DNA of 64,000 bases, from the sequence record NC_041973.1. The stretch is one strand, 5' to 3'. Positions 5,770 to 30,640 of this stretch are shown piece by piece. The position numbers and the translations under genes were made by a program. Positions within the stretch are counted from its first letter, which is position 1; each line of letters starts with the position of its first letter. The notes under the pieces are model-generated. The model had not been told where the DNA came from and ran no database searches. It saw only the letters and a list, made by a program, of their open reading frames with translations.

Positions 5770-6351
5770 ATGTCAAAGAAACTCGATACCCGTAAAAGTA
5801 TGTTCCTGGCCTTGGTGTTACGCCACCGTCCCGAAGAGATCGGAATTACCCTGGATGAGAACGGCTGGGCCAAAGTCAGCGAAGTGATCACCGGGTTTAC
5901 CTTTACCGGGCGTGGGCTCTCATTACCTGAGCTTGAGATCATCGTTGAGACGGATGAGAAGAAGCGTTACCAGCTCTCTGACGATAAGTGCTATATCCGG
6001 GCCGTGCAGGGGCATTCTCACGAGAGCGTGATGAACATGCAGCTGGAAGTGGCGACACCGCCAAAGTACTTGTATCACGGCACCCAACAGATCTCCTGTG
6101 AATCGATCGAGCGACAAGGGATCTTGCGCCTTAAACGTTTATATGTCCACCTAACGGATGACATCGAAGCGGCTTGGCGCGCAGCAACTCGTAAACGAAC
6201 AGCCGGTGCAGTCTACCGAATCGACACCGAGAAGATGACGCGGATGGGCCATGTGTTCTATCGCGCTGAGAACGGGGTCTGGCTGGCGAAGCGCATTCCT
6301 TTCTCAGTCATTGAGATGGTTGATGCACATGACGAAGAAACAAGTACCTGA
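5770..6351 (+). CDS. kptA: RNA 2'-phosphotransferase (KptA/Tpt1 family)
   Basis: LRHRPEEIGITLDENGW, RAVQGHS, LYHGT, VHLT and ENGVWL motifs. Confidence 0.92.
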   Translation: MSKKLDTRKSMFLALVLRHRPEEIGITLDENGWAKVSEVITGFTFTGRGLSLPELEIIVETDEKKRYQLSDDKCYIRAVQGHSHESVMNMQLEVATPPKYLYHGTQQISCESIERQGILRLKRLYVHLTDDIEAAWRAATRKRTAGAVYRIDTEKMTRMGHVFYRAENGVWLAKRIPFSVIEMVDAHDEETST

Positions 6352-7734: not shown

Positions 7735-8013
7735 ATGAGTAAAGGTACTTTGAAAGGCCTTGGTGTGGTGTTGGCGTGTCTTGTGATTGGCGTATTGCTG
7801 TTTGTTTTTGCAACCGCTGTTCAAGCTGCCGATACACCCGTTAACCCCCACTGTGTTGCCATTACTAACGACAGTACAATTACCACCCAGTGTGACGACG
7901 GTACCGTGGTCATTACCAACACCGCAACCTCGACGGTGATGGTGTGTCATGTAAGTAAAGAAACAAAAGGTCTTCCGCAATGCGTGAAAGACCGGGTTGT
8001 CATTTCTAATTAA
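7735..8013 (+). CDS. Small secreted Cys-containing protein
   Basis: Signal peptide ending AVQA-A; four Cys in mature part. Confidence 0.7.
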
Positions 8014-8036
8014 CGTTATTCTTCGGAGCTACACAC

Positions 8037-9170
8037 ATGCAGTACAGTACCTTTAATACCACTAAAAACGATCAGATGGCTGAACCGATGTTCCTGGGTC
8101 AGTCGGTTAACGTCTCACGTTATGATCAGCAGAAGTACCCCGCGTTCGAAAAGCTGATTGAGAAACAACTTTCATTCTTCTGGCGCCCTGAAGAGGTGGA
8201 TGTTTCGCAAGACCGTATCGACTTCCAGGGGTTACCGGATCATGAGAAACACATCTTCGTGTCTAACCTGAAATACCAAACCCTGCTGGACTCGATTCAG
8301 GGTCGTAGTCCGAACGTGGCCCTGCTGCCGATCTGTTCTATCCCGGAACTCGAAACCTGGATTGAAACCTGGGCGTTCTCTGAAACGATCCACTCGCGCT
8401 CATACACCCACATCATCCGTAATATCTTTACTGACCCCTCCATCGTGTTTGATGACATCGTGACCAACGAACACATCAAAGCGCGTGCTGAGTCCGTCAC
8501 GGAGTATTACGACCAGCTGATTGAAATGACCATGTACCTCAACTTACTGGGTGAAGGTACTCATGTAATCAATGGTAAGAAAGTCGTGGTGTCGATGCGT
8601 GCTATCAAGCGTCTGGTCTACCTGTGCATCGTGTCAGTCAACGTGCTGGAAGCCATCCGCTTCTATGTCTCCTTTGCCTGCTCGTTTGCCTTTGCTGAAC
8701 GCGAGCTGATGGAAGGCAACGCCAAGATCATTAAACTGATCGCCCGTGATGAAGCCCTGCATCTGACCGGCACCCAGCACATGATCATGTTAATGAAGTC
8801 CGGTGCTGACGATGCTGAGATGGCGGAAATCGTTAAAGAGTGTGAAGCAGAAACATACGCACTCTTTAAGGACGCTGCAGAGCAGGAGAAAGACTGGGCG
8901 AACTATCTGTTCCAGGATGGGTCGATGATCGGTCTGAACAAAGAGATCGTGTGTCAGTACATCGAATACATCACCAACATCCGTATTCGCGCCATCGGTT
9001 ACGATGACATCTACGCCGGTGTCAAAGCTAACCCTATCCCGTGGATCAACTCCTGGCTGGTTTCTGACAACGTGCAACAAGCCCCTCAAGAGTCAGAGAT
9101 TACCTCGTATTTAGTAGGTCAGATCGACTCAACTGTCGATGCAGATGCGTTTGATAACTTCGAACTTTAA
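8037..9170 (+). CDS. nrdB: Ribonucleotide reductase class Ia beta subunit
   Basis: [48 protein letters not shown]-terminal SYLVGQIDS; closely resembles enterobacterial NrdB. Confidence 0.98.
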
Positions 9171-9219
9171 TACGTGATCAGCTTCACTCACGTAGAGGGC
9201 TGATCGCTAGCCCTTTATG
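9171..9219 (+). terminator. Two hairpins between nrdB and HNH; second is terminator-like
   Basis: TACGTGA/TCACGTA (9171-9194) and AGGGCT/AGCCCT (9196-9214) followed by TTATG. Confidence 0.6.
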
Positions 9220-9227
9220 GAGAGTGT

Positions 9228-10061
9228 ATGTCTGAGATAAAAGATAACCCGGATAACTGGAAAGTGATTCCGGGTTACTCACGTTATGAGATCAACGAAG
9301 TCGGCGTTGTAAGAAAGATACATAACAAGAAGGTGATGAAACAATGGCTGCGTGGTAATTATACCGCCACTGCTATCACTTCTGATAATAAGTCAACTAG
9401 TAGAATAGAATCTATTCATATTTTACTGTGCCTTACATTTATTGGTCCAAAGCCCTTACCTGAACCTGGGCACAAACTTGTTACCGCTAACCACAAGGAC
9501 GGTAACAAACTTAACAATGTGAGGTCTAATGTAGAATGGTTATCCAATTCTGGTAATATTCTGCATGCTTACAAGAACCGGCTAAATAAATCATCACAGC
9601 ACCTGCGTCTAACCAATGTGGTCTCTGGTGAAGTTGTCGACCTGCATTCTTACCGCGAATTATCCAAATGGATGGGTAATCCTAACCTGCGCGGAAGAAT
9701 GGAGTATCTGAAGTATCGTAACAAGCTTTATCAAGGCCAGTGGCGAATAGAACTTCTTGGCGAATCAGAGAAGTCTTCAGGGTCTCGTACCAGTAAACAA
9801 GTATGCGTAATGGATGTGGCTAAACGACTTGGATTGAGGGGTGGTGAGTTTGATACTTTCATCTTTAATTCCATGCATGATGCTGCAGCGGCATTAGGCG
9901 TAAGTCGCAAAGGTATTGGTCGGTCGATTAGTACCAAAGGACGCCATGTTGTAAATGGGTACGCTATATCGCTATCATTTGACGATATGACTAATATCAC
10001 TTATGACAAAGCGTATGTGGAGATTAGTCTTAAATGGGCGAAACTCAGGGGTAAGAAGTAA
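9228..10061 (+). CDS. Free-standing HNH homing endonuclease (NUMOD4-HNH type)
   Basis: WKVIPGYSRYEINEVG (NUMOD4-like); ANHKDGNKLNNVRSNVEWLSNSGNILHA (HNH); FNSMHDAAAALG (NUMOD1-like); AT-richer codons than neighbours. Confidence 0.9.
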   Translation: MSEIKDNPDNWKVIPGYSRYEINEVGVVRKIHNKKVMKQWLRGNYTATAITSDNKSTSRIESIHILLCLTFIGPKPLPEPGHKLVTANHKDGNKLNNVRSNVEWLSNSGNILHAYKNRLNKSSQHLRLTNVVSGEVVDLHSYRELSKWMGNPNLRGRMEYLKYRNKLYQGQWRIELLGESEKSSGSRTSKQVCVMDVAKRLGLRGGEFDTFIFNSMHDAAAALGVSRKGIGRSISTKGRHVVNGYAISLSFDDMTNITYDKAYVEISLKWAKLRGKK

Positions 10062-10129
10062 GTTCTTATCTGGTCGGTCAGATCGACTCGAAAGTGGACG
10101 CCAACGATTTCGACGATTTCCAACTGTAA
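10055..10129 (+). pseudogene. nrdB: Stranded second copy of the nrdB 3' end
   Basis: Translates [24 protein letters not shown], 17/24 identical to the last 24 aa of nrdB; no start codon. Confidence 0.9.
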
Positions 10130-10177
10130 CTGCTAGGCACCCATGCTTCGGTGTGGGTGCTGTATAAAGGAGGATGT

Positions 10178-10774
10178 ATGGATGTAGGGCAACGCAATGT
10201 CCAGATCTCAGATCAGTATGAGATTATCGGCATGGCGGGCGTAAACTACCTGCCTTTAAAGAAGTCTTCCTCCGATACATACCGCGTGGTGTTGTGTCGG
10301 TTGGATGGGTTAGGGCGTGACAACACTAACTTGCATTATGACATCGATGATGCCTTCACTGACCACTACCGCTTTATCACCCAGCAACTCCCCTTTGCCG
10401 AATTTGATGGCAGGGATCGTGTCACCACACTCATGCAGAACTGGCAAGGCAAAGCAACCACCGAGATCATTGACAACATCTTTAGTTCAATTGATCCCGA
10501 CGCAGGCGCCTTTACGCTAGAAAGCATCAGTGTGGAAAACGGTTACCTTTATGGCGAGGTCAGATTAGCCAATAGCATTGTGGGAACGAATCTCTCCATG
10601 ATGCTGAACCATCCACGTCCCGATCAGGCGGCCATGATCTTTGGTGTTCGCTACCTGTCGGTCAATACCCGGCTTGACGGACTGCAATATGCTGATGTCA
10701 AGAAGATCTGTGCGTATGACGTGAATATCGTCAGCGAAACTGAATTAACCCAACGTCGTAACGGCGTGAAATAA
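10178..10774 (+). CDS. Hypothetical protein (possible degenerate prohead-protease fold)
   Basis: AGGAGG RBS before ATG 10178. Confidence 0.7.
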   Translation: MDVGQRNVQISDQYEIIGMAGVNYLPLKKSSSDTYRVVLCRLDGLGRDNTNLHYDIDDAFTDHYRFITQQLPFAEFDGRDRVTTLMQNWQGKATTEIIDNIFSSIDPDAGAFTLESISVENGYLYGEVRLANSIVGTNLSMMLNHPRPDQAAMIFGVRYLSVNTRLDGLQYADVKKICAYDVNIVSETELTQRRNGVK

Positions 10775-28999: not shown

Positions 29000-30640
29000 A
29001 TGCACATTCAAGATATGACCTTCCGCATTCTCGTGGCTACCGATACCGCTGTTTCATCTACCGGGAACGTTTTGTATCTCGTTAATCAAAATGATGAGGT
29101 GGTCATCGAACACTCCATCACCGATGAAACATTAAACGACATCAGTAATGGCGGGGATTACGATAGCGACGAGTTTAAGAAAGCGGCGGCGGCTTATCTG
29201 TATACTTGTTACTTGTATACGCGCGACTACCCTGAAGGTAAAGGTGCGGCAAGCTATGACTTCCATCGCACTGCAGGTATTATTCTGATGCAGTTTGTTG
29301 AAGAAGAAAGTCTTGGTGAATTCGAACCCGATGACTGGAACCTGGCAGAGGTCATGGTCCCTGGGTTACCAGAAAGCACCCGGGCCTTCGTATTCAGTAA
29401 TGACGGCTCTGACATTAACATCCGTATCTATCGTCAAGACCGTGGGTTGGTGAACGATCGTCTGTTCACCTATGGTGATGAAGAGACGGTTCCTTCTATT
29501 GAAGAGATGCTTGCGCAATGGGATGCTGATGTCGCTCCTACCGCCGATCCGGTACAGGAAAACGCAGCCAGCATCTCGTTTGGCGACGTCTCCTTTATTT
29601 ACACCCTGGACATGAGCAAGGAAGGACGCGAGCAACGTAAAGCTATCATGCAGGTGGTAATTGGTGAGCGCCTGGTGGCACAGCAGAAAGTCCATGAGAA
29701 CACCCAACCGCTCATGTATTACATGATGGAAGTGTTCAACATGCTGGCGCTGCGCATGACAGTGGGTCCGGTAGAAGGCATTAATGCTCAAGACCGGGTA
29801 ACCTTACTGACGGCTATCAGCGGGTTTGTGGGCGGGCATTTAGCGATGCCTGATCAGGTGCAAATCGCAGAAGGTATGCAGTACATGCACGAAGGTGCGA
29901 TCAGTGATGAGGTAACCTACATGGTTTCACATCAGTTGATTGCCGACAACCATCTGCGGGCAACCTACCAGTTCAATACCGTGGTCGATGAAACGATGCG
30001 TCGTTCAATCACCATGTGTGATGAAGTGAGCTACCTGGAAAACCCGATGAGTCCACAGGCGTTCTTCACTGCGTATCAGGCAGACCTCAGTCGTGAGCTG
30101 AAACTATCTCGGTTGTTTGACATCGCAATGATTGCGGCCATCGATCGGGGTCAGGGTCTCGGTAAAGATAACGAACTGCTGTACCGTATCAAAGAAGACA
30201 TGAAGTACTTCAAAGAGATGACACTGCATTCACCGGTGATCATGGGACGGAAAACGTATGAGTCGTTACCGAACCCGTTGGTAGATCGCCTGAACATCGT
30301 TATCACTACTGCTCCGACCAACACCTATACCACCCGCTCAGGTGTGGTGTTCGTCAACAGCAAAGAAGAAGCCCTGCTGCACGCGAAGGGTTATCTGGCT
30401 GAACACGGCGGTGATAAGATCTGGATTATCGGGGGTGCGAGTATCTATGCTGCATTCCTGCCAGATGCCAAAGAGATCCACCTGACCACCATCGGTACTG
30501 AACGTGAAGATGCTGATACGTTCTTCCCGGAAGTTGATCTGCGTCAGTTTAACGCTGCACGTCAGTTTGAGGAAGACCAGGTGTTCGAGCGTGAAGGTGA
30601 AACCTTTGGCTACAACCGCGTCATCCTGACCCGTAAGTAA
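29000..30640 (+). CDS. folA: Unknown N-terminal region fused to C-terminal dihydrofolate reductase
   Basis: MIAAID..GLGKDNELLY.IKEDMKYFKEMT..PVIMGRKTYESLP.PL.DRLNIVIT, IWIIGGASIY, DTFFP in last ~175 aa. Confidence 0.9.
   Translation: MHIQDMTFRILVATDTAVSSTGNVLYLVNQNDEVVIEHSITDETLNDISNGGDYDSDEFKKAAAAYLYTCYLYTRDYPEGKGAASYDFHRTAGIILMQFVEEESLGEFEPDDWNLAEVMVPGLPESTRAFVFSNDGSDINIRIYRQDRGLVNDRLFTYGDEETVPSIEEMLAQWDADVAPTADPVQENAASISFGDVSFIYTLDMSKEGREQRKAIMQVVIGERLVAQQKVHENTQPLMYYMMEVFNMLALRMTVGPVEGINAQDRVTLLTAISGFVGGHLAMPDQVQIAEGMQYMHEGAISDEVTYMVSHQLIADNHLRATYQFNTVVDETMRRSITMCDEVSYLENPMSPQAFFTAYQADLSRELKLSRLFDIAMIAAIDRGQGLGKDNELLYRIKEDMKYFKEMTLHSPVIMGRKTYESLPNPLVDRLNIVITTAPTNTYTTRSGVVFVNSKEEALLHAKGYLAEHGGDKIWIIGGASIYAAFLPDAKEIHLTTIGTEREDADTFFPEVDLRQFNAARQFEEDQVFEREGETFGYNRVILTRK

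Follow-up and report, generated by a model that had tools for sequence, protein, structure and literature searches.

We describe here a probable replacement of the end of nrdB, the gene for the class Ia ribonucleotide reductase small subunit, in a 64,000-nucleotide stretch of sequence record NC_041973.1 (hereafter the window), in which a gene for a predicted HNH homing endonuclease stands between two versions of the nrdB 3' end. The window is 100% identical to Erwinia phage vB_EamM_RAY (KU886224; hereafter RAY), a 271-kb jumbo phage of the genus Agricanvirus, with window base 8037 corresponding to record base 70037. We consider it probable that the HNH gene entered the genome of an Ea35-70-like Agricanvirus together with the nrdB end of a donor, and that the native end was stranded behind it in the process. 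RAY nrdB itself is a complete gene of mosaic make-up, with a native body and an imported end.

The two ends of nrdB and the empty site

The nrdB gene occupies 8037–9170 of the window, on the forward strand like the other features of this locus up to gp90, and is an open reading frame (ORF) for 377 amino acids that is matched by the Pfam family Ribonuc_red_sm with an e-value of 1e-52. Its last 24 codons and stop (9096–9170) constitute the end in use. Beyond an HNH-type ORF (9228–10061) there is a second version of these 24 codons and stop at 10055–10129, a 3' fragment that we refer to as the relic. The two versions are identical in 17 of 24 residues and in the stop, and in 50 of 75 bases. In RAY the relic has no start codon of its own; an in-frame stop lies directly upstream of it, and no start follows that stop. 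An earlier reading of this DNA, made from the letters alone and here called the sequence-only reading, had pointed to such a duplicated, start-less nrdB end after the HNH gene, and its coordinates and residue count proved exact. When all 64 kb were scanned in six frames, no further stretch of 24 residues reached 9 of 24 identities to the nrdB end, and the match of the relic can therefore not be attributed to chance.

The region was matched by ten Agricanvirus genomes, of which Ea35-70, the nearest relative that lacks the nuclease, displays the empty site. Its nrdB is directly followed by the orthologue of gp90, the native downstream neighbor in RAY (10178–10774; assigned by annotation and PHROG 11672, and collinear with Ea35-70), no HNH gene is present at the locus, and the flanks are 98% identical to those of RAY. 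Ea35-70 has only one nrdB end, which agrees with the RAY relic at 74 of 75 bases and with the RAY end in use at 49 of 75. The sequence-only reading had proposed as a test that the 3' end of a relative without the HNH gene should match 10055–10129, and Ea35-70 provides precisely this match. An in-register comparison of RAY with Ea35-70 counts 19 mismatches over the 1041 bases of 8037–9077, the native-type part of nrdB, and 36 over the 93 bases of 9078–9170. Near-identity thus breaks at 9078 and resumes from 10055 in another register. This comparison delimits a block of 977 bases absent from Ea35-70 (9078–10054), which is made up of the imported end of nrdB, the spacer behind it and that part of the HNH gene which precedes the junction. 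Given that the strictly duplicated part is 75 bases long, the insertion point may be placed at 9095/9096 or, equivalently, at 10054/10055.

The same arrangement, with no length differences, is found in five phages, namely RAY, Mortimer, Special G, Simmy50 and Bosolaphorus, and a different HNH gene is found on the other, upstream side of nrdB in MadMel, Desertfox, Deimos-Minion and Rebecca. Presence is hence polymorphic at a fixed site (five carriers, Ea35-70 empty, four relatives with the HNH gene of the other side). The element is present in Special G and not in MadMel, though both are filed under the same species. The upstream gene (contig L002, 442–2428, in MadMel) belongs to the same family as the RAY gene, with 42% identity, and in these phages identity to Ea35-70 is about 60% over the first ~200 bases of nrdB, the remainder being a patchwork of 55–98%. 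No genome carries both the upstream and the downstream nuclease genes. The genome paper on these phages reports differing HNH genes and a 'reversed order' of both genes, and leaves the second nrdB end unmentioned (PMC6690015). To judge from our alignments, the published reversal is really a matter of two different nuclease genes on opposite sides of nrdB.

Source of the replacement end, its junctions and a second case

Only six protein clusters in the protein database were related to the RAY nuclease over its full length at e-values of 1e-10 or below, and the encoding contigs were retrieved for four of them. The metagenomic contig L007 encodes nrdB, an 82% identical HNH gene and an orthologue of gp90, without a relic; the ribosome-binding site of the next gene comes immediately after the nuclease stop. 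The end in use of RAY is identical to the nrdB end of L007 at 65 of 75 bases, the closest match known, and AH06, a more distant Agricanvirus without the nuclease, possesses a protein-level look-alike of it (58 of 75 bases). Since L007 and AH06 have such related natural ends, no special recoding lies behind the end in use. The replacement end is instead an allele that occurs naturally in a diverged lineage and that came along with the nuclease gene. Thus, of the recoded replacement 3' end envisaged by the sequence-only reading, the imported end that keeps nrdB whole is retained and the recoding is not. L007 and RAY are ~80% identical in nrdB, 72–91% in the element and ~50% in the downstream gene. 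The identity within the element is low enough to suggest that L007 is a relative of the donor and not the donor itself, and a donor of this kind would have offered homology to the left of a break and hardly any to its right.

Differences in composition accompany the block. Its GC content is 0.38–0.45, as opposed to ~0.50 in the flanks, and at third codon positions the GC content reaches 0.65 in the body of nrdB and 0.58 in the relic, compared with 0.42 for the end in use and 0.40 for the HNH gene. A contrast between AT-rich codons in the end in use and the phage's preferred codons in the relic had been remarked on earlier. Its direction is correct, but its strength was overrated, as the end in use, at the 45th percentile of the phage's 24-codon stretches for codon adaptation, is quite ordinary; the relic stands at the 92nd. 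Codon usage as a proof of foreign origin was set aside as too weak for 24 codons.

The right junction lies in a microhomology of about 7 bases (10055–10061), as seen in an alignment of RAY, L005, L007 and Ea35-70 in which AA-TAAG is common. The L007 nuclease gene terminates in AAATAAG, the native nrdB reads GAAGTAAG at its Glu-Val-Ser codons, and the join in RAY is AAGAAGTAAG; it is the bases shared by the first two that locate the junction here. In RAY the nuclease gene draws its last codon and its stop from the opening bases of the relic. This right junction is common to all Agricanvirus carriers and to the metagenomic contigs L005 and L006 (from SRR14295813 and SRR14295804), whose backbone is that of an Agricanvirus, 96–100% identical to RAY. 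It may well go back to one illegitimate joining event.

The left boundary is variable. From the Tyr-Leu-Val codons on, the end in use is of donor type in all carriers, and the stretch preceding it (9078–9095) is of donor type in RAY, Mortimer and Bosolaphorus, and partly or wholly of native type in Special G, Simmy50 and L005. Donor-type sequence begins at 9078 in the first three, a few bases further to the right in Special G, at about 9092 in Simmy50 and at about 9100 in L005. The end points of co-conversion accordingly take about four positions among six carriers (the five phages and L005). The nrdB end and the 5' half of the nuclease gene in L005 are only 59–86% identical to RAY, and their occurrence in a near-identical backbone indicates that variants of the element recombine. 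The relic varies among carriers at three sites, all of them synonymous, as is to be expected if each relic was the recipient's own working end.

A second, independent case occurs in another genus. In the Klebsiella phage N1M2 (genus Nimduovirus) nrdB is followed by a 40–46% identical HNH gene, whose frame continues into a second nrdB end. The N1M2 HNH ORF (contig L004, 2998–3795) lacks a stop of its own, so the nuclease that it encodes bears a C-terminal tail of NrdB type. The homologues P0005 and P0006 of this nuclease terminate near the point at which the fusion with the nrdB end begins, which suggests that in N1M2, too, the join was made where the nuclease gene naturally ends. In sequence the N1M2 relic is similar to the nrdB ends of the HNH-less relatives Yubaba and Sureiya, with which it shares the motif EGAF; the N1M2 end in use is not. 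The nrdB genes of N1M2 and Yubaba are 73–93% identical per 90-base stretch along the body and agree at 32 of 54 bases in the last stretch. The N1M2 relic starts at the Val-Ser-Ser-Tyr codons, no more than one codon from the start of the RAY relic, a coincidence whose chance we estimate at a few per cent if joins fell randomly in the last 100–300 bases of the gene. This agreement within one codon is a hint that the position of the break sets the start of the relic.

The nuclease family extends to contigs L008 and L009–L011, in which nucleases 43–46% identical to that of RAY are encoded directly after nrdB without a relic. The gene is placed directly after nrdB in all five lineages that were looked up (L005/L006, L007, L008, L009–L011 and N1M2), and local alignment for hidden relics after the HNH gene in L007, L008 and L009 yielded scores within the shuffled range. 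As three of the five lineages adjoin nrdB without a relic, the relic is better understood as an occasional scar of one-sided acquisition than as a constant feature of the family. The association with nrdB itself holds in at least three deep lineages. Scans of viral and metagenome contigs with the family alignment drew in only distant HNH genes (at most 46% identity, partial) and no further nrdB-linked members.

The nuclease, its candidate target and competing explanations

The intact gene at 9228–10061 encodes a protein of 277 residues, a predicted HNH homing endonuclease of the I-HmuI type. It is matched by PHROG 59, 'HNH endonuclease', with an e-value of 4.5e-32. The Pfam domain HNH_3 was detected in all eight family members (best 2e-7), and NUMOD4 and NUMOD1 in five of eight each, weakly in RAY. 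A profile of the family matched the I-HmuI structure 1u3e over residues 9–130 (e-value 7e-7), and no other solved structure was matched. Across eight homologues with overall identities of 34–86% the residues N88, H89, N101, N110 and H113 are invariant. The ORF is full length in the five phages and in two metagenomic variants. In an AlphaFold2 model based on a 7-sequence alignment (mean predicted local distance difference test score, pLDDT, 60.6) the C-terminal third, made up of helices and strands, is confident, and the catalytic region scores below 50.

Residues 1–377 of RAY NrdB align end to end with the R2 protein of E. coli (e-value 3e-201). The tyrosine of the SYLVGQ motif in the swapped segment aligns with Tyr357 of the 376-residue E. 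coli chain, the pathway (radical-transfer) tyrosine, which is numbered 356 without the initiator methionine. The radical-transfer tyrosine had been predicted to lie in the swapped segment, and it is indeed present in both copies. The two tails differ at 7 of 24 residues, five of these being among the last 13, and two phenylalanine positions and one leucine position are kept in both. Given that both tails retain the tyrosine and these Phe/Phe/Leu positions, the imported interface with NrdA is within the natural range of the family, as sampled by 20 nrdB ends (six next to a 3' nuclease gene, twelve HNH-less and two relics). The gene for NrdA itself lies outside the window. The phrase 'foreign subunit interface' used in the sequence-only reading is justified as far as the seven differences go, but it overstates the case for an interface that keeps these positions and falls in that range.

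The same 20 ends reveal a candidate target. The leucine codon of SYLVGQ is CTG in none of the six HNH-linked ends, versus 13 of the 14 HNH-less ends and relics. The HNH-linked Leu-Val codons are TTA GTA in the RAY lineage and CTT GTG in N1M2, L008 and L009, and CTG GT(A/C/T) is found in 11 of the 12 HNH-less ends and in both relics. AH06 keeps the CTG form, though its tail protein resembles the RAY end in use. We infer that the recognition site covers the codons around this leucine, in the region of the radical-transfer tyrosine, and that the synonymous changes there probably render the imported end resistant to cutting.

Entry of the element could have proceeded from a free-standing HNH gene of the I-HmuI type, situated just downstream of nrdB as in several jumbo-phage lineages, and would have brought the donor's last ~25–31 nrdB codons into an Ea35-70-like Agricanvirus genome. 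In such a scenario an nrdB allele without the nuclease gene would be broken by the nuclease, at the Glu-Val-Ser-Ser-Tyr-Leu codons or directly beside them, and the left end would be repaired by homologous recombination with the donor nrdB (~80% identical). The right end, for which the donor's downstream gene offered only ~50% identity, would for that reason be joined by microhomology, once and via 7 bases, with the end of the HNH gene attached to the broken nrdB end. The recipient's own nrdB end would be left as the relic. Since then the unit of replacement end and HNH gene, with nrdB sequence on both sides, might spread among close relatives by intron-less homing.

Several observations weigh against this scenario. 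A one-sided Fisher test on the leucine codon gives ~2e-4 by our own arithmetic, a value that overstates independence because the six alleles come from no more than about three nuclease lineages. In the relic the CTG-type core is still intact, so that self-immunity requires the assumption that the site also extends to the left of 10055; the relic may then be protected as the insertion replaced sequence to its left that the site needs. L007, the donor-like contig, is only 72–91% identical to the RAY element. The RAY protein taken alone falls below the curated cut-offs for HNH_3 (0.0035) and NUMOD4. The best Foldseek match of the model was again I-HmuI, but with a non-significant e-value of 0.065; as the catalytic region is also poorly modelled, we draw no structural conclusion. 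What the sequences show directly is the empty site, both junctions, the foreign source of the end in use, the variation of the left boundary and the recurrence in N1M2; nuclease activity, the place of the cut, the resistance of the imported end, transfer and present-day mobility are what we infer from comparing them.

The locus might alternatively be a fossil scar, left by an odd recombination that took place once, with the HNH gene now an inert passenger that is passed on vertically or by general recombination only. The one right junction in all Agricanvirus carriers does speak for a single origin, and the relic is almost undecayed, such that the event may simply be recent. However, a full-length ORF in five phages and two metagenomic variants, core residues that are invariant down to 34% identity, left boundaries that vary among carriers, presence that varies within one species and the diverged left half of the element in the 96–100% identical backbone of L005 all speak against an inert passenger, and we regard this explanation as unlikely. 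We rate as quite improbable another proposal, that the stranded end is kept because it is used, either as a free NrdB-tail peptide or as the tail of the N1M2 nuclease, in binding NrdA. Mortimer, Special G, Simmy50, Bosolaphorus and L005 all have an open 31-codon ATG frame through the relic (10034–10129), in N1M2 the HNH gene and the relic share one frame, and the three relic substitutions among carriers are all synonymous. Yet the frame is closed in RAY by one stop, the only Shine-Dalgarno-like sequence, GGAG, is 11 bases upstream of the ATG, and the ATG derives from the Lys-Trp codons of the HNH frame, inside the 3' end of the HNH gene. Synonymous-only variation would also be expected if relics were sampled from working recipient alleles, and L007, L008 and L009 do without a relic. 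Free C-terminal peptides of R2 are established competitors for the binding site on R1, and a relic product (the 31 residues, or the extension of the N1M2 nuclease) could for this reason bind NrdA and disturb reductases with the native tail, be they of a competitor phage or of the host, or tether the nuclease to nucleotide synthesis. We would call such an activity a long shot; if it were real, the homing element would be a weapon against genomes without the element.

Splicing would offer yet another account, with the HNH gene in a self-splicing intron or an intein and 10055–10129 as the true last exon. HNH genes of this type are often intron-borne, as in the case of I-HmuI and PhiPA3 gp210. Against this, no Rfam family was matched at e-values up to 1 in 7900–10400 of the window, or at e-values up to 0.1 in four related loci (L004, L005, L007 and L013). 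The upstream ORF already aligns fully with E. coli R2 and has its own stop, the HNH gene is a separate ORF with its own ribosome-binding site, and L007, L008 and L009 offer no second end for splicing. A group I intron with an endonuclease ORF was considered as a candidate and rejected, as Rfam detects no ribozyme core and nrdB is whole unspliced. The absence of an Rfam match at the locus and the full length of nrdB without any joining bear out the intron-less element of the sequence-only reading, and we find the splicing account scarcely credible. Still less can be said for an account, to which we give next to no credence, in which the nrdB end was duplicated locally in tandem, the copies diverged where they were, and the HNH gene was later inserted between them. 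Both copies are collinear and in the same orientation, as such a history would have it, but the relic matches Ea35-70 at 74 of 75 bases, and the end in use matches Ea35-70 at 49 of 75 and the diverged lineage at 65 of 75. In-place drift is contradicted by a divergence of 33% in one copy versus 1% in the other.

Known systems and neighboring features

Acquisition of the HNH gene together with a donor's nrdB end has its closest mechanistic relative in MobE of phage T4, a free-standing HNH nuclease encoded beside nrdB, which nicks the 5' end of nrdB in T2, a phage without the gene (PMC2790892). In MobE homing the flanking nrdB sequence is co-inherited and the recombination point is near the break (PMC2790892). 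The RAY element would share with it intron-less homing with co-conversion. It differs from it in that MobE is encoded upstream, has a 5'-end target and leaves no stranded gene piece. The MadMel-type relatives mirror MobE directly, with the HNH gene upstream and the first ~200 bases of nrdB strongly diverged. I-HmuI of the Bacillus phage SPO1 has an HNH core like the RAY nuclease and a NUMOD4-like N-terminus, which the RAY nuclease may share. Unlike the RAY gene it is located in a group I intron, whereas the RAY locus contains no intron by Rfam; furthermore, the RAY protein is ~100 residues longer, and the fold comparison is not significant. PhiPA3 gp210 is a distant homologue of the RAY nuclease (23% identity over 85% of the query). 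This jumbo-phage HNH nuclease acts on an essential gene of a related co-infecting phage (PMC11620839), and unlike the RAY nuclease it is intron-encoded and targets an RNA-polymerase gene.

A parallel in fungal mitochondria, to which the sequence-only reading had alluded, does exist, in that host gene, endonuclease ORF or ORFs and a stranded C-terminal copy occur in this order at atp6, cob and cox1, as partial C-terminal duplications (PMC6279837, PMC7487136). The order of host gene, endonuclease and stranded, diverged 3' end is the same in RAY. The fungal elements differ in being organellar, in encoding LAGLIDADG or GIY-YIG enzymes and in often being several and degenerate, whereas RAY has a single intact HNH gene in a virus. 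The RAY case moreover allows comparison with an empty site, with a donor-like arrangement and across several recombinant boundaries. The RAY element works alike but is no member of the organellar class of gene-end-duplicating elements. Phage Aeh1 reportedly carries mobE inside nrdA, with the host gene split into two expressed pieces ('genes in pieces'). Its nrdA is thus split, unlike the nrdB of RAY, which would have stayed whole as the replacement end came along.

An arrangement that looks like the Aeh1 type is found in the Serratia phage Sureiya (contig L013, 1501–3595), where an ORF interrupts nrdB between ...KLIAR and DEALH...; this ORF carries a winged-helix annotation but has a Pfam HNH_3 match of 1e-14. 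In its sister phage Yubaba (contig L012) nrdB is intact. Sureiya nrdB is either a case of 'genes in pieces' or contains an unrecognised intron.

Free-standing homing endonucleases are thought to avoid harm by intergenic placement. The RAY case would represent another route, namely entry into the coding sequence of an essential, highly conserved gene with a replacement that works and is probably resistant to cutting. Natural sequences display every stage: an empty site, a relic-free donor-like arrangement, the scar, recombinant left boundaries and an independent repeat in another genus. Together they predict the recognition site, in the codons around the radical-transfer tyrosine, and the protecting synonymous changes. 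In our survey of the literature, whose coverage was incomplete, we found neither a paper linking Agricanvirus to homing endonucleases nor a description of a stranded gene end beside a phage homing endonuclease. Intron-less homing and gene-end duplication are already known from MobE and fungal mitochondria, and what we rate as new is the RAY variant in a virus. For annotators, this means that stranded gene ends are to be expected next to such nuclease genes.

Two stem-loops belong to the locus. That of the element lies between the nrdB stop and the HNH start (9185–9226; folding of 9165–9235 gave -28 kcal/mol, with a z-score of -3.5), and its 3' arm is predicted to cover the HNH ribosome-binding site GGAGAG (9219–9224). 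Comparable stem-loops are seen in L007 and N1M2. The endonuclease genes of T4 are under translational restraint, which this predicted structure resembles. By comparison with relatives, the other (10136–10161) is native: in phages that lack the element it comes after nrdB, and in RAY after the relic. Scans for consensus promoters and terminators gave no more hits than in shuffled sequence.

Among neighboring genes, the related jumbo phages OBP (contig L180, 2334–2588) and Survivor (contig L181, 2334–2585) have a gene for a small 2Fe-2S ferredoxin directly adjoining the nrdB stop; no such gene is present at the Agricanvirus locus. Elsewhere in the window there is an RNA 2'-phosphotransferase gene at 5770–6351, and at 29000–30640 an ORF of 546 residues that is annotated as dihydrofolate reductase and is long for that enzyme.

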